DNA of 50,817 nucleotides, from contig QPMI01000345.1 in the NCBI GenBank assembly GCA_004431415.1, positions 1 to 50,817 of the forward strand, read 5' to 3'. Every line of letters begins with the position of its first letter. The first letter of the stretch is position 1. Under the pieces are notes generated by a model. The model searched no databases. It had not been told where the DNA came from and saw only the letters and a program-made list of their open reading frames with translations. Shown here piece after piece: positions 1,805 to 42,696 of the stretch. Position numbers and translations under genes: made by a program. The DNA comes from Cyanophora paradoxa CCMP329. Lineage: Eukaryota > Plantae > Glaucophyta.

Positions 1805-4800
1805 ATGGCGGGCAAGAAAGCGCGGCCGCCCGCGGGCGACGTGCAAGTCAAAGATGAGCGCTTCAAGCACATGCATGATGACCCGCGGTTCAAGAAGATG
1901 CCGAAGAACCTCAGCAAAGTCAAGATCGACCAGCGGTTCGCGAGCATGTTCACAGACAAGCGCTTTCAGGTCGAATGTTCGTAGCTCGCGATTCAGTGCC
2001 TGTACCAGCGCCCGTACGCGCCGCGGCGCAAGTATCGACGCGATCGCGTTTCGCCCGCAGACAAGGTCGACAAGTACGGGCGCAAGATCAAGAAGAAGGC
2101 GGAGGACGACATGAAGCGCTTCTACCAGGTCGACGAGGACGAGGAGAAGCCGGCGGATGAGGACGCAGAGGAGCAGGAGGCACCGCAGCCGCCGCCGAAG
2201 GAATCGAAGAAGGCGGCCAAGCGCGCCCAGCCGCAGAGCGAATCCGAACCCGAGGAGGAGGACGAGGATGAGCCTGAAGCAGACGAGTGCGCACGGCAAC
2301 CCGCCCGCCGCGGCTCAATTTTTGATCCAGCGCGTCAGGCAGGAGGGGGACGGGGCGGCGAGCGACGAGGAGGGAGCGGAGGAGGACGGGAGCGAGCGGA
2401 GTTTCCAGTGGGACGGCAAGTCGAGCTCCTCCGAGGACGAGGCGCTGCCGGCGCCCGAGGAGGACGAGGGCGAGGACCTGGTGAGCCCGCCCCGCGCCCC
2501 GGCCCCCGCCCCGCCCCCGACGCGGCGGCGCGCAGTGGGAGTCGGTGAACGAGAGGAAAGACGTGCCGACGCTCGAGGAGGCGACCCCGCGGCTCGCCGT
2601 AGTCAACATGGACTGGTCGCGCATCAAGGCGCGCCCCGGCCCCCCGGCGCGCCCGCCCCGCCGCCCCTGCTGACGCCGCGGCAGGCGGTCGACATCATGG
2701 CGCTGCTCCAGTCCTTCGTGCCCAAGGGCGGCCTCATCCGGCGCGTCACGGTGTACCCCTCGGACTTCGGCCTGGAGCAGATGGCCAAGGTGCCGCGTGC
2801 CCCGCGCTGCGCGCTCGGGCGGCCGACGCTGATGCGCGGCGGCGCAGGAGGAGAGGTACGGGCCGCAGGGGATCTGGAAGGAGGGGGCGGGCGGCTCGGC
2901 GTCGGGCTCGGCGGACGAGGCGGCGGCCCCGAAGCCGGCGAGGAGGCGGGGCGGCAAGGCCGGCAGCGGCGGCAGGGCCCCGGCGGCCTCGAGCAGCGGC
3001 GACGAGTCGGGCAGCGGCGGCGAGGAGGCGCAGGATGACGAGAGCGGGGAGGAGGGCGGGGAGGAGGGCGAGGGCTCGGAGGGCGAGCCCAGCGGCAGCG
3101 AGAACGAGGTGGCAGCGCGGAGGCGGAAGGAAGAGGTGCGCCGGCGCGCCCCGCGGCCGGCCGGCGGCGGCGGCGCCTGACCTCACGCGGGGCGCCCCCT
3201 GACACGGGGCGCGGCGCAGGAGTCGTCGCTGGACGCGCGGCGGCTGCGGGAGTACGAGCTGAGCAAGCTGCGCTGGTACTACGCCGTCGTCGACTGCGAC
3301 ACCGCCGCCACCGCCAACGCCATCTACGAGCAGGTGCCCCGCCCGCCCCGCCCGGGCCCGGGCCCCCTCTCGCTGGGCCCTTTGGGTTCCCCCGCCTCTC
3401 GTTTCCTGGGCCTCTGTTCTTCGATTTCGGGGTGGGGTCTGGGTCTCCTGGGTTCCGCTGCCGCGAGATGATGCAACATATTTTTCCCTCATCCGAATCC
3501 AATAATGAGGATTTGCAAAGTTACGGATGCTGATCTCGAGCGCCGCTCTAAATAACCCTAAAACGGGCCTCTTCGTCGAAATGATGAACAAAATTTTTCC
3601 CTCATCCGAGAAATCGTGAGGATTATCAAAAGTTACGGATGCTGATCTCGACGCATGGCCCGTCATTAGCTGCTAAATTTTTCAAACTCGAGCTCTTGCT
3701 CACTTCTCAATCTAGAGCTCTTGCCCAGCCGGGGGTCGAAATGATGAACAAAATTTTTCCCTCATCCGAAATTCCGTGAGGATTATCTAAAAGTTACGGA
3801 TGCTGATCTCGACGCATGGCCCGTCATTAGCTGCTAAATTTTTCAAACTCGAGCTCTTGCTCACTTCTCAATCTAGAGCTCTTGCCCAGCCGGGGGTCGA
3901 AATGATGAACAAAATTTTTCCCTCATCCGAAATTCTGTGAGGATTATCTAAAAGTTACGGATGCTGATCTCGACGCATGGCCCGTCATTAGCTGCTAAAT
4001 TTTTCAAACTCGAGCTCTTGCTCACTTCTCAATCTAGAGCTCTTGCCCAGCCGGGGGTCGAAATGATGAACAAAATTTTTCCCTCATCCGAAATTCCGTG
4101 AGGATTATCTAAAAGTTACGGATGCTGATCTCGACCCCCCGGCTCTTACTCTAAAGAGGCGGCCGCCTTAGTTGATGAGTACACTTTTCATCGCATTCTC
4201 TGACCCGAATGAGGAGAAATCAAAGTGCATCGCCAGTTTCTGATGCAAGGCGGCCGCCTCTAGATCTTGGGTTTCGTTTTTGCGAGTATTTCCGCCACGT
4301 GCAGTCCGCTATGATGACCTCAAGTTTTTCCCTCAACTGAATGCTAGTGAGGATAAACAACCGTTCGCTTTAAATACCTGATCGTCGGACCGCTTCTTCG
4401 GCTTCTTCCCCCCTTCCCCCCCCGGCGCGCCCTCGCCGCGCCCACGCCGCGCTGACCCCCGCGGGGTTTGCAGTGCGACGGGCTGGAGTACGGGCGCTCG
4501 TCGAACGTGCTGGACCTGCGCTTCGTGCCCGACGGCCAGGATTTCTCCGAGCGCAAGATGCGGTCCGCCCCGCCCCGCGCCGCCACGTCCCTGCCCGCCC
4601 CGCCCCGACCGAGCGGGGCGGGGCGGGCAGGGACGTGGCGACCGAAGTGCCGCCCAAGTACGCGCCGCCGACGTTCGAGACGAAGGCGCTGCAGAGCACG
4701 CGCGTCGAGTGCACGTGGGAGGCCGGCGACGAGGACGCCAACCGCACCCGCCTCACCTCCGACAAGTGCGCCCTCCGCGCCGCCGCGCCCGGGCCGCGGC

Positions 4801-6154
4801 CGCCGGGGCCGACGCGGGGCGCAGGGTCTTCCGCAAGCAGAAGGACGTGCGCTACCGCGACTACAATGCCCTTCTCGCCTCTTCGGACGAGGAGGAGGAG
4901 GAGGAGGAGGCGGGCGGGGAGGGGAGCGGGGGCGAGTGGGACGCGGCGAGCAGCCGGGCGAGCAGCAAGAAGAGCACGCTCTCCAAGGCCGAGCGGCGCG
5001 CGAAGCGCCGCGAGATGCGCGACAAGTACACGTGCGCCGCCGCCCCGCCGCGGGGGCGCCCCCGCATGCGCAGCGAGCGCCCACACGACCGCCGCGTGCG
5101 CAGGGCGCTGCTCTTCGGCGACGGCGACAAGGCGAAGAAGAACCCGGGGTGCGCCGGGCCCGGGCCCGGGTCGGAGCGCGGGGCGGGGGGGCTGAGAGAC
5201 GGGGCCAGGGACATGGAGGCGACGTTCGTGCCGGGGGCGGCGGCGCGGGGCCGGGAGCTCGCGGAGAAGCTGCAGAACAAGGGCGGGGAGGAGGAGAAGA
5301 CGGTCTGGGAGAAGTACCTGGAGGAGCGCAAGCGCCGCCGCAAAGAGCGCCGCAAGGCCCGCCAGGCCGGCGACTCTTCCGGCGCCGAGGCCAGTGGCGC
5401 CGACGAGGACGAGGGCGATGGCGAGGGCGAGGGGGCGGGCCCGTCGGGCAAGGGGGAGATGAAGGCGGACGTGTTCGGGGGCGCGGACCTCGGCTTCAAC
5501 GACCCCTTCTTCCTCGGGGCCGGCGCCCGCCCGCCCAAGCCCTCCAAGGCCGCCGCCCGCGAGAAGCAGCGCGCCGAGGCGGCCGAGGAGCGGGCGCGGG
5601 AGAAGGAGGAGGCGCGGCGCGAGGAGGAAAAGCGCCGCGCGGAGCTCGAGCTGCTCATGATGGACGAGTCGCTGCCCGCGGAGGGCGCCGAGCGCAAGCG
5701 CGGCTTCAACACCAAGGAGGACAAGAAGAAGAAGAAGGACAAGGCGAAGAAGAAGGGCGGCAGGGGCGCGGAGGAGGCGGCCGGGGAGGAGGAGGCGGCC
5801 GGCTTCAAGATCGACACGGCGGACCCGCGCTTCGCGGCGCTCTTCTCGTCCCCGGCCTTCGCCATCGATCCCACGCACCCGCAGTTCAAGAAGACGGCCG
5901 TCACGCTCCAGATCCAGGCCGAGCGCCAGAAGCGCCGCGCCGCCCCCGCCGAGCCCGCCCCCGCCCCCGAGAGGCCCGCGCCCTCGTCCGCGGCCGGCGG
6001 GGCGGGGCGGGAGGAGGACGGGGCGGACCGGCGCCCGCTCTCCGCGATCGTGAGCGCGCTGAAGCGCAAGGCGGCGGCGGCGGCCGAGCCGGCGCCGCGG
6101 CCCGCGCCGGCCCCCGTCAAGGCCCCGCCGCCCAAGAAGCCCAAGGCCAAGTAG
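1805..6154 (+). CDS. ESF1: Pre-rRNA processing protein ESF1 (NUC153 domain), multi-exon
   Basis: Motifs DPRFKKMPKNLSKVKIDQRF, VDKYGRK, RLAVVNMDWSRIKAVDI, VTVYPSDFGLEQM, LREYELSKLRWYYAVVDCD, IYEQ|CDGLEYGRSSNVLDLRFVPD, TVWEKYLE, and C-terminal DPRFAALFSSPAFAIDPTHPQFKKT. Confidence 0.95.
3464..3538 (+). ncRNA. Intronic box C/D snoRNA, family A copy 1 (diverged)
   Basis: Terminal stem CGAGA/TCTCG; C box ATGATGC 3468-3474; D' CCGA; C' ATGAGGA 3505-3511; D CTGA 3530-3533; guides TTTTTCCCTCAT and AAAGTTACGGATG. Confidence 0.85.
3575..3652 (+). ncRNA. Intronic box C/D snoRNA, family A copy 2
   Basis: Stem GTCGA/TCGAC; C box ATGATGA 3581-3587; D' CCGA; C' GTGAGGA; D CTGA 3642-3645; same two guides. 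Confidence 0.88.
3735..3813 (+). ncRNA. Intronic box C/D snoRNA, family A copy 3
   Basis: C box ATGATGA 3741-3747; D CTGA 3803-3806; GTCGA/TCGAC stem; guides identical to copy 2. Confidence 0.88.
3896..3974 (+). ncRNA. Intronic box C/D snoRNA, family A copy 4
   Basis: C box ATGATGA 3902-3908; D CTGA 3964-3967; one C>T difference from copy 3 between D' and C'. Confidence 0.88.
4049..4144 (+). ncRNA. Intronic box C/D snoRNA, family A copy 5 (extended external stem)
   Basis: C box 4063-4069; D box 4125-4128; flanks AGCCGGGGGTCGA and TCGACCCCCCGGCT pair with one bulged C. Confidence 0.88.
4155..4261 (+). ncRNA. Intronic box C/D snoRNA B
   Basis: Perfect 15-bp terminal stem AGAGGCGGCCGCCTT (4155-4169) / AAGGCGGCCGCCTCT (4247-4261); C TTGATGA 4172-4178; D' CTGA 4200-4203; C' ATGAGGA 4209-4215; D CTGA 4240-4243. 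D guide GCATCGCCAGTT is complementary to the conserved LSU rRNA sequence AACUGGCGAUGC (recalled). Confidence 0.88.
4304..4390 (+). ncRNA. Intronic box C/D snoRNA C (shares its D' guide with family A)
   Basis: Stem GTCCG/CGGAC; C ATGATGA 4311-4317; D' CTGA 4337-4340; C' GTGAGGA 4347-4353; D CTGA 4378-4381; D' guide TTTTTCCCTCA. Confidence 0.85.
4581..4640. repeat. Perfect 27-bp inverted repeat with a 6-nt loop, spanning an ESF1 intron/exon junction
   Basis: CGCCACGTCCCTGCCCGCCCCGCCCCG (4581-4607), loop ACCGAG, then the exact reverse complement at 4614-4640; the acceptor AG at 4629-4630 lies in the right arm. Confidence 0.95.
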
Positions 6155-6461
6155 CCCTCAGGGCCCTTTCACCCTTTCCGCAGCAGCTGTAGCTCTAGCA
6201 GATTCTAGCTGTAGGCAGTTTCAAGTTTCAACCAGGAAAGGTAGCGCAGCCAGGCAGTGTAAGTTTCAACCAGACTCTCTGAGTGCCTCCTTTAGTGTTT
6301 GAGTGAGGGCAGGAATCCTGCAGGTCGTGATAGTTCACGCTGAAATGCAAAATTTTCTTTCAAAGCGCACGCCCGCCCTAATTTCCGTAGCAAACGGGGT
6401 GCGAGGGGGGGGGGGGGGGGGGGGGGGGAGGGGCGGCGGGGCGGCGGGGCTGTGCAGGGGG

Positions 6462-22132: not shown

Positions 22133-23028
22133 GCCCCGCCCGGGGCACGTCTGCAGCTGGGCCGAACCGGGGCCCCCTTGTGTCGATGGGGGCAAACGAT
22201 GTAAGCATATTTCGAAATTATTGGGACAGAAATACACTAGAGCACAGGACAGGAAGGAAGAACTTTGGGGGGAAATGTCACTGCTCAACGGGACCCGCAA
22301 GGGATAAGGATCGCCCTTCAGGTACAAAAAAGCAGAATATCCATTTTCCTGCCGCTTCATGGCTTAGATCACGAGTTCACTAAGCCACAAATTCAGACAG
22401 GTACGAAAAGAGCCACCAGGGCTCGTCTCATGAGAAAAAGATCGAAGCGGGGGGAGGAAGCGAAGCGACAGCTAGATAAAAGCATCGGAAGGAAAGGCTG
22501 GAGACGGTTCAGTTCGCTCTGGAAGGCGAATTGAGAACACGCCGAGTGGAACTCGCCAGAGTGTCCGGCTTGGTTTCGCGCGATCGAGAGACTGAAGGCT
22601 CAAAAGAAGCACGCGCATCCCCAGAACGCGAAGCGCGTAAGCGATCGCGAGCGCCGCGGATGCACCAGACGAGCGCTCGGCGATCGCCGACGACAGGCAC
22701 GGCCTGCGGAGCCGGGGTGAGATCTCGGCGGTTGCACGGTCAGGGTTGAGCAGCCGCACCTCAGGGATTGCCTGGATGGCGCGGAAGAAAGGGCAGCAAA
22801 AGGCGGCACTTTTGGCGGGGGTAGACTGGTTTGTCCAGCCGGGTACGCGGACAGCGCAGCCGCCCAACCTCGCGGTCTTCGTTCCTAGCCTCGAAGCCGA
22901 ACGTGAGCTTCCCTGCTTGCGCCTGCGCGACGTTCGGCGGGCCCAGCAGCGGCGCTCACGATCACAAGTTAGTCCGCGATTCGTCAAGCGCACCAGCGCC
23001 CTAGGCTCGTCGGGTATCCGATCTCGCA

Positions 23029-27484: not shown

Positions 27485-29867
27485 TTACCTTGTAGCTGGC
27501 GTAGGGGCCGCTGAGGGCCGGCCGGGCCCGCGCGACGCGGGGGCTGCGCTCGCGGAGGCGGCAGCAGAGGCGACGGCCGCCGCCGGGGCTTGCGTGGGGG
27601 CCGCCGAAGGCCGGCCGGGCCCGCGGGAGGCGGGCGCTGCGCTCGCGGGGCGGGGGCGGCGGCGGAGGCGGCGGCAGAGGCGGCGGCGGAGGCCGGGAGA
27701 GAGGGGTCGGAGGCCTTTATCTGGGCCACTAGCGCCCGCAGGTCCGCGTCCGCGAAGCTGCCTCTGCGGCACGCCTCGCTCGAGGCACGGCTAGGCGGGC
27801 GGCGGGCGGCGGGGGCGGACCGCTGCGCGATCTCGTGCGTGGCAGCGTTGAAGGGGAAGATGAGGTCGAACCCGCCCCAGCGGCTCGGGCGCCCGTCCGC
27901 TGCGGCGCCGCGGGTGAGCGTAGCAGGCGCGGGGGCGAGCGCGCTCAGGAGCGGCCGCACGGGGCTCGAAGGCGGGTGGGGACGGGCCGGCAGCCCGCGC
28001 CGTACCCGTGGAGCCTTCTTCTTGGGGTGTCCGGGCGGAAGCAGGGGTGGCATGGGTGGGGAGGTCGGTAGGGGGCGGTGGCGCGGGCGGGTCGGAGGGG
28101 TAGGCGCATGGGAGGCGGAGGCGGGGAGGGCCGGGGCGCGCGGCCGGGGCCGGGCGCGGGGCGGGCCGGGGGCCGAGGATGCGGGCCGGGGCGGCGCGGG
28201 GCGGGGCGGCGGCGGCGTCGAGGCGGTCCTCGCCCTCCACCGCCGCCATCAGGTCCGCCAGCATCGGCTGCGGGGGCGGCGGGCGGAAGGACTCGACCCC
28301 CCGTGACGGGGCGGGCGGGGCGGGCGGGGCGGGGGGGACCTCCTTGACGAGGGCGTCCACGGGCCCGTCGAGGCCGAGCGCCGGCGCGGCGTTCACCTGC
28401 AGGCGCGCTCACCGCCCGCGCCGGCGGTGGCGGGGCGGGGCGGGACGTGGGCGGGAGGGCGGGCCTCGAGGAGCCAGGGCTTGAGGTCGGCGTCCAGCAG
28501 CACGTCGAAGCCGTACACTGCGCGCCCCGCGCTCGGGCCCGCCCCGCGCGGCGCCGGCGGCCGGGGGCGGGCTCGAGGGGCCGCACGCTCGAAGGCCGCC
28601 GGGGCGCCCTTCTTCACCGCCGTCGCGAGCGAGAGCAGCGTCAGGCAGATGATCGCCCGCACCCTGCTCCCCGTCACGCCCGGGGTATGGGGGGGATACG
28701 GGAAGGTGGGAGGGAGGGAGGGGGGGCACCGGCCCCAGAGGCGCTCCAAGTCGACGTTGGCGCGGCGGAGGTGGGCCCACAGCTCCGCGAAGGACCACTT
28801 GCAGCCGGGGCCCACCGCCCCCTGCGCGGCCGGTCAAGGGCGGGTGGAGGGATGGGACGGGAAGGGGGGAGGGGGGGGGGGGGGGGGGGGGGGGGGGAGC
28901 GCCTTGCCGTCGAGGAGCGTCGGGCTGTGCTTGTTGATCGAGCAGTTCGTGAGGTGCGCGTACAGGTTCTCCAGCGCCCCCTTGTCATACCTGCCCGGGT
29001 ACCGTGTCACCCGGGAGGTAGATGGCAGCAGGAGGGGGTCTCACACCGTTGGGTGCTGAAGCGGGCCAGGCCGTCCCGGTACAAGAAGACGCGCAGGGGG
29101 TAGACGCTCGTCACGAGGACGTACCTGAGGGGGCGCTGGAGATCAGGCATGCAAAGAGGCGGTTTCATGGCCCGGGGCGCGGACAAGCGCAAATCGAACT
29201 TGAACCCGGAGATGAGGAGGGGGTTGTCGACGTATTTTTGAACGACGTACTTCGTGTTGTACTGCAGGTTTGCGAGATCCCGGAACAGGAAGATGCCCCG
29301 CCCCCGGCTCAGCTCTGCCGGCTTTCCGATCCAGATGCTCTGCGCGGCGCGGGCGTGGTGTTCAGCAAGAACGAGGCTCAATGAGAAGGGGAGGAAAGTA
29401 CCCCCGGGTCTGCCTCGCTCTGGGCGCAAAATGCTGTCACAAACTTCTCGTACTCGAGAGGCAGCGTGTACGTCTGCAGTGCGGGCCGCGTTCGGTGCAG
29501 CGGGCGCCGCTGCTGATGCCTCCCGCACCTCGGGATAGAAAGCGAAGACGCTCCCGTGCACGGCCTTGAACTTGCGCAGGTTCCTTCGCAGGAACCTTAG
29601 CTAGGCGTCGTTGCACGTTCTAGTTTATTCTGACCTGAGCAACTTGTCTTTCAGAGTGATGCTCCCGCTCCCTACGAAGTACGGCGTCCGTGTTTTCGGC
29701 AGCATCGCTTTCCATTCATCGACCTGAGAGCGAACTGAGCAGGGAGTGCGCCACCGGAGAGCGGAGCGAACCTTGAATCTGCCAGAAGGAGAGCGCCAAC
29801 GAGGAAGCGCTTTTTCGCTCGGCTGTGAGCTCGAGGCGGCGCTGGCAAGCTCATCTTCGTCGCTCAT
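27485..29867 (-). CDS. TTLL2: Tubulin-tyrosine-ligase-like polyglutamylase, TTLL2-like; 3' end approximate
   Basis: [108 protein letters not shown]. Confidence 0.88.
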
Positions 29868-29961: not shown

Positions 29962-31118
29962 ATGCAAGTGCCGTCGTGGCGGCGGGTGACGACGTCGCCG
30001 ACGACGCCCGAGGTCGGGCGCGACACGAAGCCCCACTCCAGCTATCAGCTACCCTTGCCGCTCGCAATCGATCGCCGACGGCTGCTACGACGCAGCTGCG
30101 CGCAAGCTGAGCTGCGCAGAACGATTTGCGTGTGTACCCCCCGCGGCTTTAAGTAAGAATCGACTTGTGAGCCTAGGAGGCAGCGTGCAACCATGCGGGA
30201 CGGTTCGCGGCCCCCGTCGGACGATTCCGCGCCAACTCTTACTCGAGCAGGGCGCCCCGGCGCCGAGAGTGCGAGGCTTCTCAAGGTTCGCCCACGGCCG
30301 CCTCCACTCCCGGCCGCGGACTGCTAACTGGCCGCTAACGAACAGGAGTACTTCTCGGTGCGTCCCCGCGCCCAGCGAGGGCACCGCCGTCGACGCTCCG
30401 ACGCGATGAGCTAGCGCGTCCAGCTGACATGTCAACTGGCTTACCATACCGCTTGCAGCTGCCTTATAATCAGACCGTCGTATTCGGCTTCGACGCCGAG
30501 CTAGCAGGCTCGCGCCCTTCTTCAGTGGCGTGCGTGTTTGTCGCTGAGCGCTGCGGCGTGCACAGATGCCTACGAGGACTTGGTAGCCGGCCGCGTCTGG
30601 GTATTCCAAAACTTCATCTGCTTTGAGAGCGAGGAGGGGTCGCAGCGGAAGGCACGCGTCCGGTGCACAAGCGAACCGTGCCCGGCTCTGACGCCCCGCC
30701 GCAGTGCATCGCCCTTGCTGATGTGGCCGACGTGTGGACGGACACCGATTCGATGCGGGAAGGAGCGCCGCACAACTTGCTTCTAATCAGGCTAGAAAAT
30801 GCGCGCGCCCGCGCGGGCTTCCGGCCCCGCCCCGCGCGCCCAGCCGCCGCTAACTCTTGCTGCAGGACAGCCGGGTGACGTTTCACGCAGGTCAACACAC
30901 ACGTGCTACGTTTCGCTTTGTCAGCAAGCCGCTAACATTTCAACAGGCATTCACACGACGCGTGCTTACGAGGAGATCCACTCTGGTGCGCTGCTCTAGC
31001 CCCTCGCATCCGCCTCTCCCGGCCTGACGGCGCCCGTGCAGCGTGGGAGGAGCAGAGCCCCTTCTGGCAGAAGGCGGCGATCGTCCTCGACACGCTCTGC
31101 TCGTTCCCCGGCCTCTAG
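29962..31118 (+). CDS. Small GRAM/PH-like domain protein, multi-exon (missed by the ORF track)
   Basis: Spliced exons give LLKEYFSLPYNQTVVFGFDAELA...VAGRVWVFQNFICFES...CIALADVADVW...LLIRLE...VTFHA...AYEEIHSAWEE, which resembles the GRAM pattern F-x-LP...GR(L/V)Y...N.ICF.S...I.L.D. Confidence 0.55.
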
Positions 31119-31310: not shown

Positions 31311-33908
31311 CTAGCTGGCGCTGGGGCCCGGGGCGTCGCGGCGGGGCCCGGCGCCGGCCGCGGGGTGCTGCAGCTGGGCGCTGTTGCCGGCGGCGCCGGC
31401 GTGGCGGGCCCAGTGGCGGGCGGCGCCGACGTTGCCGCGGCCGGCGGCGTAGGCGCGCATGGCCTCGAAGGTGGGGCGCCGGAGCGGGAGCTCCTGGGCG
31501 AGGGCGCGCCGGATGAGCAGCGAGGCCGCCCGTACGCGTCCCGCCCCAGCGACTCCGCCACCAGCCGCTCGTACGCCGTCGCCAGCTCCATCGCGCCGCC
31601 CTTGTCGCCGGCTGCGGCAAGCGCGGTCAGGCGCGGCGGGGCCGTGGGCCGGGGGCGGGAGGGGTTTGGGGGCTCGGACCCTGCTCGGCGAGGTGGAGCT
31701 CGCGGAAGGCGGGGAGGAGGTCGCTGTCGGCCGAGCCGGCGGCCGGCCCCGCCTCGAGCAGCGCCCGCGCCCGCCACGCGTGCCACGCCCGCGGCCCCAG
31801 CAGCGCCCGCGCCCCGCGCGCGTCCAGCACGGCCGCCACCTCGGCCGCGCGCCGCGGCCGGGCGGCGAAGAGGGTCTCGAGGAGGCCGCGGATGCCGACG
31901 GGGACGCCGGCGGCGGGGCGCCAGACGCGCTCGGCGCGCGCGATCTCGTGCTGGGGCGCCTCGGGGTTGAGCCCCTCGAGGAAGGCGCGCGCCGCCTCGA
32001 CGGCCGCCTGCATCGTCCGCGGCTCGAGCAGCAGCCCGGCCGTCCACTCCGCGTTCATCAGCGAGCGCCGGCCCTTGGCGTCGCAGAGGGGCGCCGCCGC
32101 CGCCGCCGTCTTGGCGACGAGGGCCTGGTCCTCACGCTCGTTGGAGGCGAGCAGGGCGCGGGCCCAGCCGACGGCGAAGTTTGACATGCCGGCGGCGTCG
32201 CGGCCCGGGTTGTAGGAGACGTCGGGGGCCGCCGAGGGGGTCGGGCCGGGCGCGGCCTGCCCCCTGCGCGAGAGGAGCTCGGCGGCGGCGCGGAGGTCGG
32301 CGGGGAGGGAGGCGTCGCCGGCGCTCATCGCCCGGCTCGAGTCGCCCCTCCGCCACCGCGCGAGGACGGCGAGGATGACGGGCGCCGCCCCGTGCCGCAC
32401 GAGCTCCGGGGCGGCGTTCCCCATGGCGGCGAGGGCGCGGCGGCTGCGGACGCGGCCGGCGAGCGCCTCGTAGGCCTCCGCGCCGTCCTTGGTGCGCCCG
32501 GCGCGCAGCTTCCCCAGCACGATCTCCAGCAGCACCTGCGCCGCCGGCGCCCTCAGGGAGGCGCTCGGGGCGGGTGCGGGCGGGGCGGGCCTCGAAGTGG
32601 AGGAGGCGCGGGTCGCCGCGGCCGTGGCGGAGCGGCTCGACGCGGTCGCGCGCGTCCGCCTCCAGCGCCGCCTCTGCCGCCGCCGCGATCCGCTCCGCCA
32701 CGTCCACCCGCCCCGCCTTCACCGCCTCCCGCGCCGCCGCCCGCCGCAGCCCCGGCAGCGCCGGCCGCCACACGGCGTCCGTCGCCGCCGCAGCCAGGAA
32801 GTCCTCCAGGCAGGCCGGCGGGGCGCCGCGCAGGCCCGAGACCGCGAGCCACGTCAGCAGGCCACGCGAGCTCGAGGGGAAGCCGGGGAGCGCAGAGGTT
32901 GCCGTCAGCAGCGAGGAGAAGGCGGCCTGGGAGGAGGGGGCGCCGGCGCCGAGGGCGGCGGCGGAGCGGGGGCCGATGGCGGCGCGGCGCTGGCGGACGA
33001 GGCCGGCGAGGGCGCGGAAGAGGATGCGGGTGCGGTACTCGTGCTGGCGGGGGTCTGATTGGATCTCCGCCAGCACGGCCTCCACCTCGCCCAGCATGCA
33101 GCGCCCGATCGCCAGCGTCCCCACGAAGCTGCGCTGCCGCGGCGGGAGGATCGAGTCGGGGAGGCCCTCCGCGCGCGCCAGCGCCTGCCACCGCTCGTGC
33201 TCGTGCGCCAGTATCAGGTGGCGGAAGAGCAAGAGCAGGAGGTTCATGGACCGCGGGTGCCCGGCGTTCCGCAGCGCCTCCACGATCCGCTCCGCCGCAG
33301 ACGCGTCGCCGGCGGCGAGCAGCGAGCGTACGGCCGCGGTCGAGACCGTCGCAATAGAGACGACTGCGTATGGCCGCCTCTGCTGCTGCTGCCACTGGTT
33401 CATCTGCTGCTGCTGCTGTTGTTGTTGCTGCTGCTCCTGGTTCTGTTGCTGATGCGCGCCCTCCTGCGGCTTCGGCGCTCTGGAAGCCTCCTCTTCGGCC
33501 GCGCTGACGATAGCGGCGATCGCCTTCTCCATGCTGCCGGCCACAGCCGCTTGCTGGCTCGCTCGGGACAGCTTGCCCGCCAGCGCGTCGATCCTCCGCT
33601 GGATGCGTTCCGCTTGCATCCGGTCGCTTTGATAGTACGCGTTCTTCCTCGCCTCCTTCTGCTCGGGCGCTCCATTGCTAGGCGCTGTAGCTGGCGCTGA
33701 AGTAGACGACGAAGCGACTGCGGTTCCGTGGAGGGGCCGGATCGCGATCGGCGTGGCCGCGTCCGCAATCGCGCGTAGTCGCCTCCTGGCAAGGCGGCCA
33801 CCTGTGTCTGCGCAGCGGGGCCCGCTCAGACTCGACGGCGCCGTGCCACCCGGCGCGGCGCGCTCGTCGCGAACCTGAGGCCGCGCGCCGAATCACACGA
33901 CCCCACAT
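31311..33908 (-). CDS. Unknown alpha-helical protein with a mitochondrial-type presequence and a polyQ tract
   Basis: After one intron the N-terminus reads MWGRVIRRAASGGRLARRRLRAIADAATPIAIRPLHGTAVASS (Arg-rich, few acidic residues); long coding-like exons; probable 1-nt indel near 31530. Confidence 0.6.
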
Positions 33909-34386
33909 CGCGCGCTCTTGCTCAAGCTCGGGCAGCTGCTAAGGGCTAGGAACTGGGCTGGAGGGGTAGGCGATTTCGAACTTCCAACCTTCGGCTCAGC
34001 AGCTTGCAAAAAATTGCGCATATGCATGCGCATGCCGCCTTGATCATGAGCTTCCCCGAATCTGATTCGGCCTTCAGTTGACTGACTCAATGAGCATATG
34101 CATGCACGCCCGGCGGCCGGAGCCGCGCGCGGGGCGCTCGCAGAGTTGAAATTGAGATCGATATAGATAATTACTTCAAGATCATCTCAAACACGATTTC
34201 CTGCGCATGCTGACACAGCGAGCCAATTCGAAGCAGGAAGATCGAAGCATCTGAATGAGGCGCAGCCCTTGCACTAGCGGCTGCGGGAGCGCACTGGGCG
34301 CTCGGATCGGAAGGCATGCAGAAAAAGAAACGGATGTCCGGAAAGGGTAAAGCGAAATGCTGAGGGTGAAAAAGTAGGGGCGGGTC

Positions 34387-36042
34387 TCAGTTTGCGGCGG
34401 AGAACGCGTTCTTCAGAGCGACCTGCGCGGGCGCGGCGTGTTGGTCGCCGCGGGGCGCGCGGCGGGCGGGCGGGGCGTGCCTGCGCGGCGAGGTAGTCCC
34501 GGGTGCCCTTCATGACGGAGAGGAGGACCTCGAGACGCTTCAGCGTCTCCTGCATCTCCAGGAGCTGCGCGGGTGCCGCGTTCGGAGGGGGCAGCGCGCC
34601 CGGCGGGGGCAGAGCGCGGGGCACCAGCTGCAGCTCGGCGAGCTCCATGTCGAGCGTGCCGGCCACCGCGAAGCTGAACTCCTGCCGGGGCGTCAGGGGC
34701 GCGCGAGGCACGCGGGCAGGGGTGCGCCTCGCCTCGTAGAGCGGGCTCGAGGGGCCCTCGGCGACGGCCCGCTCGCACCACGAGTCCAGCACCTGCAGGC
34801 TCTTCTCGGGCGCCGTCCCGCTCAGCTTGCCGGACAGCTCGAGCACGTCCCGCAGCGCGCCGGCCACCTCCGCCCTCCGCCCCTCCAGGCTCTCGAATCC
34901 CTCCGCCGCTGCCGGCGGCACGTCGTCCAGCCACTGGACAATAGCCTGCGAACGAAGGCTCACCCCCCCGCGGAGGCCGGCGGGGCGCGCTCGCCGGCGG
35001 CGCACCTTGACGTAAGGCTTCTGCTGCGTGATCTGCACGATCCGGAAGCGCTTCTTCGCGTGCGTTATCACGATCAGCTGCCCGTCCTCCAGCTTCTCCG
35101 TCTGCGTCACCTCCGCGCAACAACCCACAGTGGCAAGCTGGTGCGGGTGAGCGCAGGGCAGAGCGTTGCGAGGGCGGCGGCTCACCGTCCCCCGTCCCTC
35201 GTCCTCGCTGTACAACACTACCCCAAACAGCTTATCCGCATCCAGTATATCCTTGAACATCAACTTGTAGCGGTCTGCGTGAGATGGAATCAGAATGTGG
35301 TCCCGTCTCGGGGGCACAGAGATGCGCGGACGGCATGTGCACCCTCGAAAATATGTAGTGGCATCACCGTTCCAGGGAAGAGAACGACAGAGAGCGGAAA
35401 GAGGCAAATCTCTGACCGCTCGTGCACATTTGGAGTGAGCGGTTGCGAGCACGACCCCGGCGGGGCGAGCGCAGTAAACGTGCACACCGGAGAGGCCGTA
35501 GAGAGTCGGCCCGCTGGAACCGCCGACGTCCAGATTGTCCGCGGGCGCGATGTTGTCGAACTTTGATGGCCGCACCAGCGGAGCCGGCACACTGCTCGCC
35601 TCCTCGTCGCCGCTGTCGTCGTCGTCCTCGCTGTCATTCTCCTCCGGCTCCTGGGATGCCACGCGTCAGAGCGCGCGTGCACGCTCTCTCCGCTGCGCCG
35701 GCACGTTCCGCGCACCGCCCCGCCACTGTTTGTTATGAAACACGGAGGCACCGAGCGGCCCGAGCGATCTGCATGCAGATGCCGATAACCCGTGCCGGCC
35801 GCTGCTGACGGCTGTTTTGGCCGACGGAAGCGAAGTGCCGAGTTGAATCCAAAACTCCAACCGCCGCCGAAAGCGCGCGCACGCCGCAAAGGCGGCGAGA
35901 GCTTGCTCGCAAGGCGGCCATCTGCCGCCGGGGAGACGGCGGCAGCGAACGAGGCTTGTCTGCTCCTAGAACATGCCGACGGGCTCGACGGCAGGGGCGA
36001 GACGAAAGCCGAAGATGGCGCTGAGCGCCTATAACTGTTCAT
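34387..36042 (-). CDS. Stand-alone Lon protease N-terminal (substrate-binding) domain protein with a plastid transit peptide
   Basis: Ser/Ala/Arg-rich N-terminus (SSAFVSPLPSS...); ICLFPLSVVLFPGTVMPLHIFE-RYKLMFKDILDADKLFGVV, LATVGCCAEV, EDGQLIVITHAKKRFRI, FSFAVA, LLEMQETLKRL. Confidence 0.88.
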
Positions 36043-40464: not shown

Positions 40465-42540
40465 CTACCTGCCGCGGGTGGAGGCCGAGGCGGGGCGCGC
40501 GCGGCCGGGCTGCGAGGGCGAGGGCGACGGGGCGGCCGGCGGGGCGGCCGGCGCGAGGGCACGGCGCTGCGGGGCCGCGTGACGGGCACGGAGGAGGGCA
40601 GCATGGCGATGGAGGCGGATGGGTAGTAGACCTGTCGGGGCCCGGAAGGTAAGATGGACAAACAGCGAGCCGCGGGGCGGACGTCGGCGCACGGGGATGG
40701 GGGCGTGCCATTCCACGGGGCGCGCGGGGCGCGCGGGGCGGCCGCCTGGCGGGGCGCGGCGGGGTGGGCGTGGCCGTGGCCGTGGCCGTGGGCGGGTGCG
40801 GGGGCGGGGGCGGGGGACGTGGGCGAGGAGGCGCCGGGCCCGTCCCAGGGCCCGAAGCCGGAGCCGAGGGAGTCGCGGAGGTCGTGCTCCGGGGCGGCCA
40901 CGCTCGCCTCGCTGGGCTTGCGCGAGAGGGCCTCCGCCAGCACCCGCGGCACGTCCACCGCGATCGACAGCGCCGCCCCGGGCCCCAGGCCCGTCCCCGG
41001 CCCCGCGCCCGCCCGCGGCGTCCCCGCCCACGCCCCCAGGAACTCGTGCAGCAGCCGCGGCGACGTCTGCGCGGCGCCCTCCCGCCGCTCCACCGGCTCC
41101 GCGCTTCGCTGCGCCGCCTCGAGCTGCGCGCGCTCAGAGGAAGGCGGGGCGTGAGGGCGGGGGCGGGGGCGGCGGGCACCATGGCCTGGAGGTGGCGGCC
41201 CTGGCGCTCGGCGGCCTGGCGCTCGGCGCGCTCCCGCTCGTACATCTCGGAGACGGCCTGCAGCTCCGCCGCGAGGCGGTACTGTTCCGCCTCCAGCGCC
41301 GCGATCCGCTCCTCCTGCGCCGCCGCCGCCCGCCCCGCCGCCTCCAGCTCCCGCTCCAGCTGCCCCGGCCGCGCCGCCGCCTCCGCTCTTGGCGCCGCCG
41401 CAGCCTCCGCCGCCTGCGTGGCGCGCCGCGCCGCCGCCGCCGCCGCCGCCCCGCCGCCGGCCGGCGCGTGCAGCGAGGAGAGCGAGTGCGAGCGGGGGCG
41501 CCCGCCGCGCGTTTCGGGTTCGGGGGCGGCGCGGGGGGCGGGGGCGGCGCCGCCTCCTCTGCGGGCGCCAGGGCGGGCGGGGGTACAGGCAGGACCTCGT
41601 CGGGCGGCGGAGGGGAGTAGGGGCGCGACGGCTCGTGCAGGGAGGGTGCCGGGGCGACGCCGTGGGCCGGGGCGATGGGGTGCGCCGAGGAGGGGGCCGA
41701 GGAGGCGGACGTTGATGCGTAGGAGGAAGGGTGAGAAGGCTGGGGCGCCGAGGCGCTGGTCGGGGCCGGGGCGGGGGCGGGCGGGGGTCGCGGGGGTGGG
41801 TGGGCGATGGCGCTGCGGAGCTGGGAGCGGATAGCGGATACGAGGGAGGCGTCCCCGCCTTCGGCGGGGGCATCGGGCCAGGCATCCTCCCGCCGGGGGC
41901 GCAGCCCGAACCGCTCCGCTACACTCGCCGCGTCCAGAGACACGGGGTACGAAGGCGGCGGAGACGGGGCGGGCGGCGACGCGGGGGGCGCGTCCTCCCA
42001 AGGGGGTACACCCCGGGCGGAGCGCCGCTCGACGCCCGCGCTCGTCGGTCGAGTGGGCCGCTGGATGAAGAACCCGCCGCCCAACGGGACAGGGACAGGG
42101 CGCGGGGCGGCTGCGGGGAGTGGTGAGGGCTCTGCTGTGTGTGGCGAGCGGGGCGGGGCATGCGCACGGGCGTTTCCGGCGAGGATGAAGCCTGGCGCGG
42201 GAGAGGCCGAGGTGGGCCGCTTGCGCTCCATCGCGCTCGAAGGGCGAGCCCGCGAGAAGCCCGCCCCAGTGCTGTAGGGCGGCAGGGGCTGGCCGGGCGC
42301 CGGCGTGGGTTCCGGACCCGCGTACGCATAGCTCGGCTGCGGGGCGGGAGGGGCGGGCGGAGGGTGACCCGGGGCCGGCATCGGCGAGGGAGGGCTCCGC
42401 GGTACTGCGTGCCCTGCCGACGACGCGCGTCTGCTCTGCTCCCAGAGCGCAGGATTGCCATTGAAGGCCTTCAAGATGGCGTCTGGATCAACGGGAGGTG
42501 GCTTGTTTGAGTCACGCCTCTTTCCGTGGTTCCAAAACAT
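40465..42540 (-). CDS. Pro-rich, low-complexity protein with a central coiled coil, unknown function; boundaries approximate
   Basis: MFWNHGKRRDSNKPPPVDPDAILKAF..., repeated RP(S/T)SA motifs, coiled coil LERELEAAGRAAAAQEERIAALEAEQYRLAAELQAVSEMYERE; one or more indels or introns break the frame. Confidence 0.55.
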
Positions 42541-42581
42541 CCTCTCGTGGATGCTTGGCACCTGGCGGGGGTTCGCTTTTT

Positions 42582-42644
42582 ACGCTTAGCTACTCTCCAT
42601 CACAGCTGAGCACAGCTGAGTACGGCACACGCTTAGCTACTCTC
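42582..42644. promoter_or_regulatory. Nested direct repeats in the bidirectional promoter upstream of THO2
   Basis: ACGCTTAGCTACTCTC at 42582 and 42629 flank tandem CACAGCTGAG x2 (42601-42620). The repeats are seen; a regulatory role is inferred from position only. Confidence 0.4.
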
Positions 42645-42696
42645 TATCGATAGCGTACCCGTCGGTGCGAAAAAGAAGGAGCGCGCCGCGCCTCGA

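Follow-up and report, generated by a model that had tools for sequence, protein, structure and literature searches.

A probable intronic cluster of seven box C/D snoRNA genes, representing three species, in the ESF1 gene of Cyanophora paradoxa

A single intron of an ESF1-like gene in the glaucophyte Cyanophora paradoxa CCMP329 very likely houses a polycistronic cluster of seven box C/D small nucleolar RNA (snoRNA) genes. The genes represent three snoRNA species, for which a processing route and targets in the large-subunit rRNA (LSU) are proposed below. The intron is located at positions 3334-4473 of contig QPMI01000345.1 (GenBank assembly GCA_004431415.1), and "the window" refers to the whole 50,817-nt stretch that was analysed. 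The cluster was first noted in a preliminary description of this stretch, which is followed up here.

The intron is 1140 nt long, has GT..AG ends and separates the codons ...Y-E-Q from C-D-G. In assembled contigs from two independent RNA studies (X1 and X7), position 3333 is joined to 4474 and exactly 1140 nt are skipped (the contig junction aligns as 3329->4470, cut +4); thus the intron is real. The same contigs are spliced at three other ESF1 introns, 3136-3219 (84 nt), 4563-4630 (68 nt) and 4766-4824 (59 nt). The intron is about 15 times the length of these neighbours, and both its borders and its unusual length are as given in the preliminary description. The three short introns are very GC-rich, and the snoRNA-bearing intron is a clear outlier of the gene.

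The host protein was identified exon by exon in Pfam. The RRM_ESF1 profile runs unbroken across the intron, from profile position 118 upstream to 119 downstream, and a match to NUC153 is found in the first and last coding exons. By these domains the host is classed as an ESF1-like gene, with a predicted role in ribosome assembly or ribosome biogenesis. The intron and its two adjoining exons are as follows.

3220-3333, + strand: upstream ESF1 exon, ending ...IYEQ; Pfam RRM_ESF1 profile 83-118, E 1.1e-12; in spliced contigs of X1 and X7.
3334-4473, + strand: host intron; defined by spliced contigs of two RNA studies.
4474-4562, + strand: downstream ESF1 exon, starting CDG...; Pfam RRM_ESF1 profile 119-145, E 3.8e-8, on 4474-4560; in spliced contigs.

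Within the intron seven units, U1 to U7, are arranged head to tail on the + strand, i.e., the strand of ESF1, and each displays boxes C, D′, C′ and D in order together with a terminal stem. The D box is CUGA and the C′ box UGAGGA in all seven. The C box is AUGAUGA in 5/7 units, the exceptions being U1 (AUGAUGC) and U6 (UUGAUGA), and the D′ box is CCGA in U1-U5 and CUGA in U6 and U7. The D′-to-C′ loop measures 6-9 nt. The units are listed below with the spacers that separate the members of a 161-bp tandem repeat.

3464-3538, + strand: U1; C AUGAUGC, D′ CCGA, C′ UGAGGA, D CUGA; stem CGAG(A)/(U)CUCG, 4-5 bp.
3574-3653, + strand: U2, second copy; 6-bp stem CGUCGA/UCGACG; SNORD12 match of 24.3 bits, sub-threshold.
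3654-3734, 3814-3895 and 3975-4052, + strand: spacers of the 161-bp repeat; no boxes; fold z +0.24.
3735-3813, + strand: U3, third copy; 5-bp stem GUCGA/UCGAC; member of the 161-bp tandem repeat.
3896-3974, + strand: U4, fourth copy; 5-bp stem.
4053-4139, + strand: U5, fifth copy; 9-bp stem GGGGGUCGA/UCGACCCCC; fold z -2.3; SNORD12 match of 33.3 bits, E 1e-4.
4155-4261, + strand: U6; C UUGAUGA, D′ CUGA, C′ UGAGGA, D CUGA; 15-bp GC-rich terminal stem; minimum free energy -48.2, z -5.7.
4304-4390, + strand: U7; D′ guide UUUUUCCCUCA, D′ box CUGA; 5-bp stem placed 2-4 nt off the boxes.

The units thus have the features by which box C/D snoRNAs are recognised, namely C and D boxes, a terminal stem of at least 4 bp, and an ordered D′/C′ pair with a short loop. 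Their arrangement is that of an intronic cluster, with at least two snoRNA genes in one spliceosomal intron on the strand of the host gene. The predicted sizes, 75-107 nt, exceed the RNAs of about 70 nt that had been anticipated.

The cluster also stands apart in base composition. Its core, 3461-4392, is 46% GC in a window of 73.5% GC. The intron flanks are 73% GC (the first 127 nt) and 78% GC (the last 81 nt). Both strands of the 50.8-kb window were scanned for a C-like box followed 45-115 nt downstream by CUGA, with a stem of at least 4 bp and an internal D′/C′ pair. The scan recovered exactly U1-U7, and no other complete unit was found in the approximately 100 kb of scanned strand.

Sequences of the cluster itself are present in RNA. 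X1 and X7 are taken as RNA runs because both hold spliced ESF1 mRNA. X1 has contigs inside the cluster at 3431-3604, 3575-3764 and 4232-4486, the last of which crosses the 3′ splice site, and X7 has one at 3740-3930. The word depth of these contigs is approximately 3-12 vs 48-59 for ESF1 mRNA, and in both runs there is next to no coverage of the GC-rich 5′ part of the intron. Two further data sets of uncertain library type, X4 and X5, yielded intron contigs only. It should be noted that contig ends track the 161-bp repeat, with lengths of 190-191 nt that equal the period plus k-1, and therefore say nothing on the ends of the RNAs. Together the contigs show that the cluster is transcribed by RNA polymerase II within the ESF1 pre-mRNA and that the intron is spliced out.

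Comparison of the units with one another resolves them into three predicted snoRNA kinds: U1-U5 (five copies), U6 and U7. All seven of the ordered units in the preliminary description were recovered with their stems, but they amount to three distinct species only. U2-U5 form a 161-bp tandem array, each period made up of the snoRNA and an 81-nt spacer, for which Tandem Repeats Finder (TRF) reports 3.5 copies with 98% matches; an earlier guess that annotation software would see a repeat here fits this call. The repeat units of U3 and U4 differ at one base, in the D′-C′ loop, and the near-identity of U3, U4 and U5 points to recent duplication or homogenisation. U1 has the same D′, C′ and D boxes and both of the same guides as U2-U5; its linkers and flanks differ, as does the last base of its C box. 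U1 thus appears to be the older copy of this snoRNA, indeed the oldest, and the five copies arose by tandem duplication.

U7 is a distinct snoRNA. Its 5′ half is paralogous to U1-U5, and it shares their 11-nt D′ guide without a shift of register; it departs from them in the D′ box (CUGA vs CCGA), in the linkers and in the D guide. The terminal stems, GUCGA/UCGAC in U2-U5 vs GUCCG/CGGAC in U7, differ by two compensatory pair changes. Because the D′ guide of U7 is the same as that of U1-U5, six of the genes (U1-U5 and U7) are predicted to serve one D′ site.

Guides were compared with 117 eukaryotic rDNA loci from metagenomes, fetched with a 31-nt universal LSU pattern. Yeast (Saccharomyces cerevisiae, Sc) numbering was taken from L095, a metagenome contig with an S. 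cerevisiae-type rDNA unit, which has the right base at 20/20 known 2′-O-methylated (Nm) positions of yeast 25S rRNA in range and at 17/17 known 18S positions. The target nucleotide is the base that pairs with the fifth guide nucleotide upstream of D or D′. In the sampled loci, three of six distinct guides are complementary to LSU over at least 10 nt, and U7 D′ repeats one of these targets. The predicted targets are listed with the target nucleotide in brackets.

U1-U5 D guide: LSU AUC[C]GUAACUU, second C; 11 Watson-Crick bp; Sc C1918; 117/117 loci, by construction.
U6 D guide: LSU AAC[U]GGCGAUGC; 12 Watson-Crick bp plus 2 G-U; Sc U1138; 33/92 loci.
U1-U5 D′ and U7 D′ guide: LSU GUGA[G]GGAAAGAUGA (the G in GUGA[G]GGAAAG); 9-bp Watson-Crick core, 13 bp with G-U; Sc 362; 42/78 loci with UGAGGGAAAG.

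The preliminary description had proposed three LSU complementarities, and all are present in real LSU sequences. AUCCGUAACUU is found in every fetched locus, by construction, as the fetch pattern contained it; UGAGGGAAA is found in 42 of the 78 loci that cover its region; and AACUGGCGAUGC, which is complementary to the U6 D guide, is found in 33 of 92. The fifth-nucleotide rule leads to the same target nucleotides as before (the second C, the G after UGA, and the U). All three targets occur together, each in its best form, in individual LSU loci, L001 and L053 among them.

As a control, the median best score over 12 complete LSUs was compared with that of 400 shuffled guides. Shuffles reached the observed median in 2/400 cases for the U1-U5 D guide and in 0/400 for the U6 D guide. 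The U1-U5 D result is not circular, since the shuffled guides were scored on the same loci. A shuffle test by the maximum over divergent rDNAs, variable regions included, was uninformative (17-108 of 300 shuffles reach the observed score) and was set aside. On these pairings, the three kinds of guide RNA probably direct methylation of LSU rRNA.

A further match concerns U6. The 5′ part of its D′-side antisense region, 4184-4192 (CUUUUCAUC), is a perfect 9-nt complement of LSU GAUGAAAAG, which is located directly 3′ of the U1-U5/U7 D′ target GUGAGGGAAAG. The pairing is out of register with the U6 D′ box and the motif is A/U-rich; the match could be a chance one or an accessory pairing.

Several observations weigh against the cluster as interpreted here. 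The RNA data are assembled Logan contigs, which are blind to RNA ends and levels and hence to discrete mature RNAs. Rfam, a check that the preliminary description had called for, has no family with a match at gathering thresholds in the whole window. U1 combines a non-consensus C box with a weak stem and may be decaying. The LSU targets were read on metagenome loci, not on the rRNA of the host itself. The D′ guide is not significant against shuffles by the median over the 12 complete LSUs, because its target is lineage-specific (42/78 sampled LSUs), and for U6 D′ and U7 D the sampled loci offer no convincing rRNA target.

Known methylation maps also fail to include the predicted sites. Yeast positions 362, 1138 and 1918 are not Nm in the yeast column of the comparison table and are not known as Nm sites in yeast, and the yeast base at position 362 is U. 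The Arabidopsis RiboMeth-seq per-nucleotide table (PMC8053127) reads G357-A358-G359 at the first site and A1143 (Nm, U38) ... C1147-U1148-G1149 at the second, with G359 and U1148 both scored "No". The third site, Arabidopsis C1922, appears in neither Arabidopsis Nm list; it lies 30 nt 3′ of Um1892, which corresponds to yeast Um1888.

Two identifications with known sites were tried and rejected. The AUCCGUAACUU site does not hold yeast Cm2197 / human Cm3680, as the C is C1918 on L095. The D′ target does not equal Arabidopsis Gm399; the table reads U398-G399-C400 there, and the equivalent G is the unmethylated G359. Two weak candidate targets of the U6 D′ and U7 D guides are likewise not claimed: 5.8S AAUGCGAU, with 8 bp (10 in one locus), and small-subunit rRNA GUGU[U]CAAAGC, with 14/16 positions paired, 2 mismatches, and 11 contiguous pairs in two loci.

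The strongest rival to a fully functional cluster is a tandem repeat derived from snoRNAs, either decaying or selfishly amplified, in which one or two units function and the rest are redundant copies, produced by unequal crossing-over and without separate function. The near-identity of U3, U4 and U5 within a repeat of 98% matches, the AUGAUGC box and 4-5-bp stem of U1, and the single D′ guide common to six genes are all as this would predict, and the comparison of copies is compatible with amplification by unequal crossing-over. However, the D′, C′ and D boxes are intact in every copy, as are the two guides, with only U1 departing, by one base, in the C box, and multi-copy isoforms are usual in the snoRNA clusters of plants and Chlamydomonas. 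We regard this alternative as unlikely, though it deserves serious weight; it refines the explanation by a snoRNA cluster and does not replace it.

It is less probable still that the units form genuine box C/D ribonucleoproteins of which some do not methylate rRNA, and act instead as folding chaperones of pre-rRNA, on other targets (small nuclear RNA, tRNA or mRNA), or as orphans. The absence of all three sites from the Nm maps of yeast and Arabidopsis, and the two guides left without a convincing target, are what would be expected in this case. The complementarities, however, extend over 11-14 bp in exact D/D′ register, take in the 9-bp core and involve conserved segments of LSU. Methylation maps moreover vary widely by lineage, and in Ostreococcus only about half of the rRNA methylation sites are common to plants.

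It is hardly credible that boxes and complementarities came together by coincidence in a repetitive intron of higher AT content (a satellite, or the relic of a transposon) from which no snoRNA is made: TRF does call part of the region a tandem repeat and Rfam offers nothing at gathering score, but seven complete architectures occur in 930 nt with none elsewhere in the scanned strands, two diverged paralogues share one guide at an unchanged register, the stems have compensatory changes, and only 0-2 of 400 shuffles match the guides.

With the cluster read as a set of snoRNA genes, novel methylation sites in the host lineage are a plausible prediction, because methylation maps differ strongly between lineages. 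The specific proposal that the cluster installs three LSU 2′-O-methylations (Sc 362, 1138 and 1918) that neither yeast nor Arabidopsis has is made tentatively, with the arguments almost in balance and doubt slightly ahead. If true, a deep-branching and very GC-rich alga would have a layer of ribosome modification specific to its lineage, with six of the seven genes devoted to one site, and the AT-richer snoRNA island would be the visible footprint of selection against extreme GC pressure.

No Rfam family is assigned to the units, because the matches are only generic, sub-threshold C/D matches. When E values up to 10 are admitted, 35/37 sub-threshold matches are to C/D snoRNA families; these lie on the + strand and follow the register of the units. 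SNORD12 (RF00581) scores highest, with 33.3 bits on U5 vs a gathering score of 43. SNORD12/SNORD106 (RF00581) resembles the unit in its T-rich D′ guide (UUUUUUCCCCAUC vs UUUUUCCCUCAUC) and in box spacing; however, the guides differ where the target is decided. On this ground, and on the score, membership in the family was rejected. No matching guides were found in the plant snoRNA family supplements. A literature search found no description of Cyanophora snoRNAs, and the snoRNAs of this organism appear to be undescribed so far.

The preliminary description held that several snoRNAs in one intron would require endonucleolytic processing beyond debranching, and this is judged sound. After transcription and splicing, Snu13/15.5K, Nop56, Nop58 and fibrillarin would assemble on each C/D kink-turn. 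By analogy with plants, algae and yeast, the units would be separated by endonucleases that cut either within the spacers or within the long stems of U5 and U6, and exonucleases would then trim the pieces to the snoRNP boundary, which would leave RNAs of approximately 75-105 nt. The mature snoRNPs would guide LSU 2′-O-methylation by base pairing, with the target set by the fifth guide nucleotide upstream of D or D′.

The spacers of the 161-bp repeat are the presumed sites of separation. They contain no Rnt1-type hairpin and fold no better than shuffles. Speculatively, an enzyme of the RNase III type could use the long stems of U5 (9 bp) and U6 (15 bp), the only evident duplexes. A host gene of ribosome biogenesis would couple the supply of snoRNAs to ribosome production, as reported for Ostreococcus.

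Elsewhere in the window, three weak C/D-like candidates have no recognisable D′/C′ pair: 29656-29740 (+), 33449-33510 (+) and 35290-35370 (-). They combine a C box of the GUGAUGC type with CUGA and a stem of 5-6 bp, and those at 29656-29740 and 35290-35370 are located in low-GC islands. Further islands below 55% GC are at 1851-2000, 6151-6400, 22151-22575, 29526-29750, 30851-31000, 33951-34375, 35201-35400 and 42451-42675. These were considered as snoRNA arrays and rejected; by eye they resemble untranslated or intergenic sequence. The ESF1 stop codon is at 6152-6154, and an uninterrupted run of 24 G, at 6405-6428, approximately 250 nt past the stop, borders the next very GC-rich region.

The find contributes predicted snoRNA genes that had not been annotated, together with three testable rRNA methylation sites, and leaves the knowledge of how snoRNAs work unchanged. 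At the level of sequence the cluster is well supported and the concept is ordinary; a modest interest attaches to the predicted new sites and to the lineage. In practical terms, non-coding RNA genes of this genome can be flagged easily by islands of low GC content within long introns; such islands would be concealed by repeat masking.

The arrangement as such is already known, and intronic clusters with endonuclease-dependent processing are textbook knowledge for plants and algae. Intronic snoRNA gene clusters have been described in Chlamydomonas reinhardtii (Chen et al. 2008, Genetics 179:21, cited in PMC7671301) and in rice (Liang et al. 2002, NAR 30:3262, cited in PMC2780460), and are likewise established in Drosophila and Ostreococcus. 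As represented in the citing articles, the Chlamydomonas and rice clusters resemble the one described here: tandem box C/D genes on the host strand lie in a single intron of a protein-coding gene, isoforms have arisen by local duplication, and processing from a polycistronic intronic precursor is presumed. The present cluster differs in its organism, which is very GC-rich, in its host gene, ESF1, and in guides that have been matched to no described family.

Ostreococcus tauri (PMC7671301) has uncapped snoRNAs processed from introns, with a third of the host genes in ribosome biogenesis, and two intronic clusters, numbers 3 and 5. Intronic snoRNAs in ribosome-biogenesis genes and intronic clusters are thus common to both algae, whereas the O. 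tauri snoRNAs are almost all single-copy and one species is present fivefold here. Ot-CDsno44 of O. tauri targets a neighbouring A (the Sc A1133 equivalent), not U1138.

In yeast, the seven methylation-guide snoRNAs snR72-78 are made from one transcript, which is processed by the RNase III Rnt1p and by Rat1p (Qu et al. 1999, cited in PMC2780460). As outlined in the citing article, this system matches the present one in having seven C/D snoRNAs per precursor, for which endonucleolytic separation is followed by exonucleolytic trimming, a route that is proposed for Cyanophora as well. The yeast unit differs in being an independent, non-intronic transcript, and the Cyanophora spacers lack a stem-loop of the Rnt1 type.

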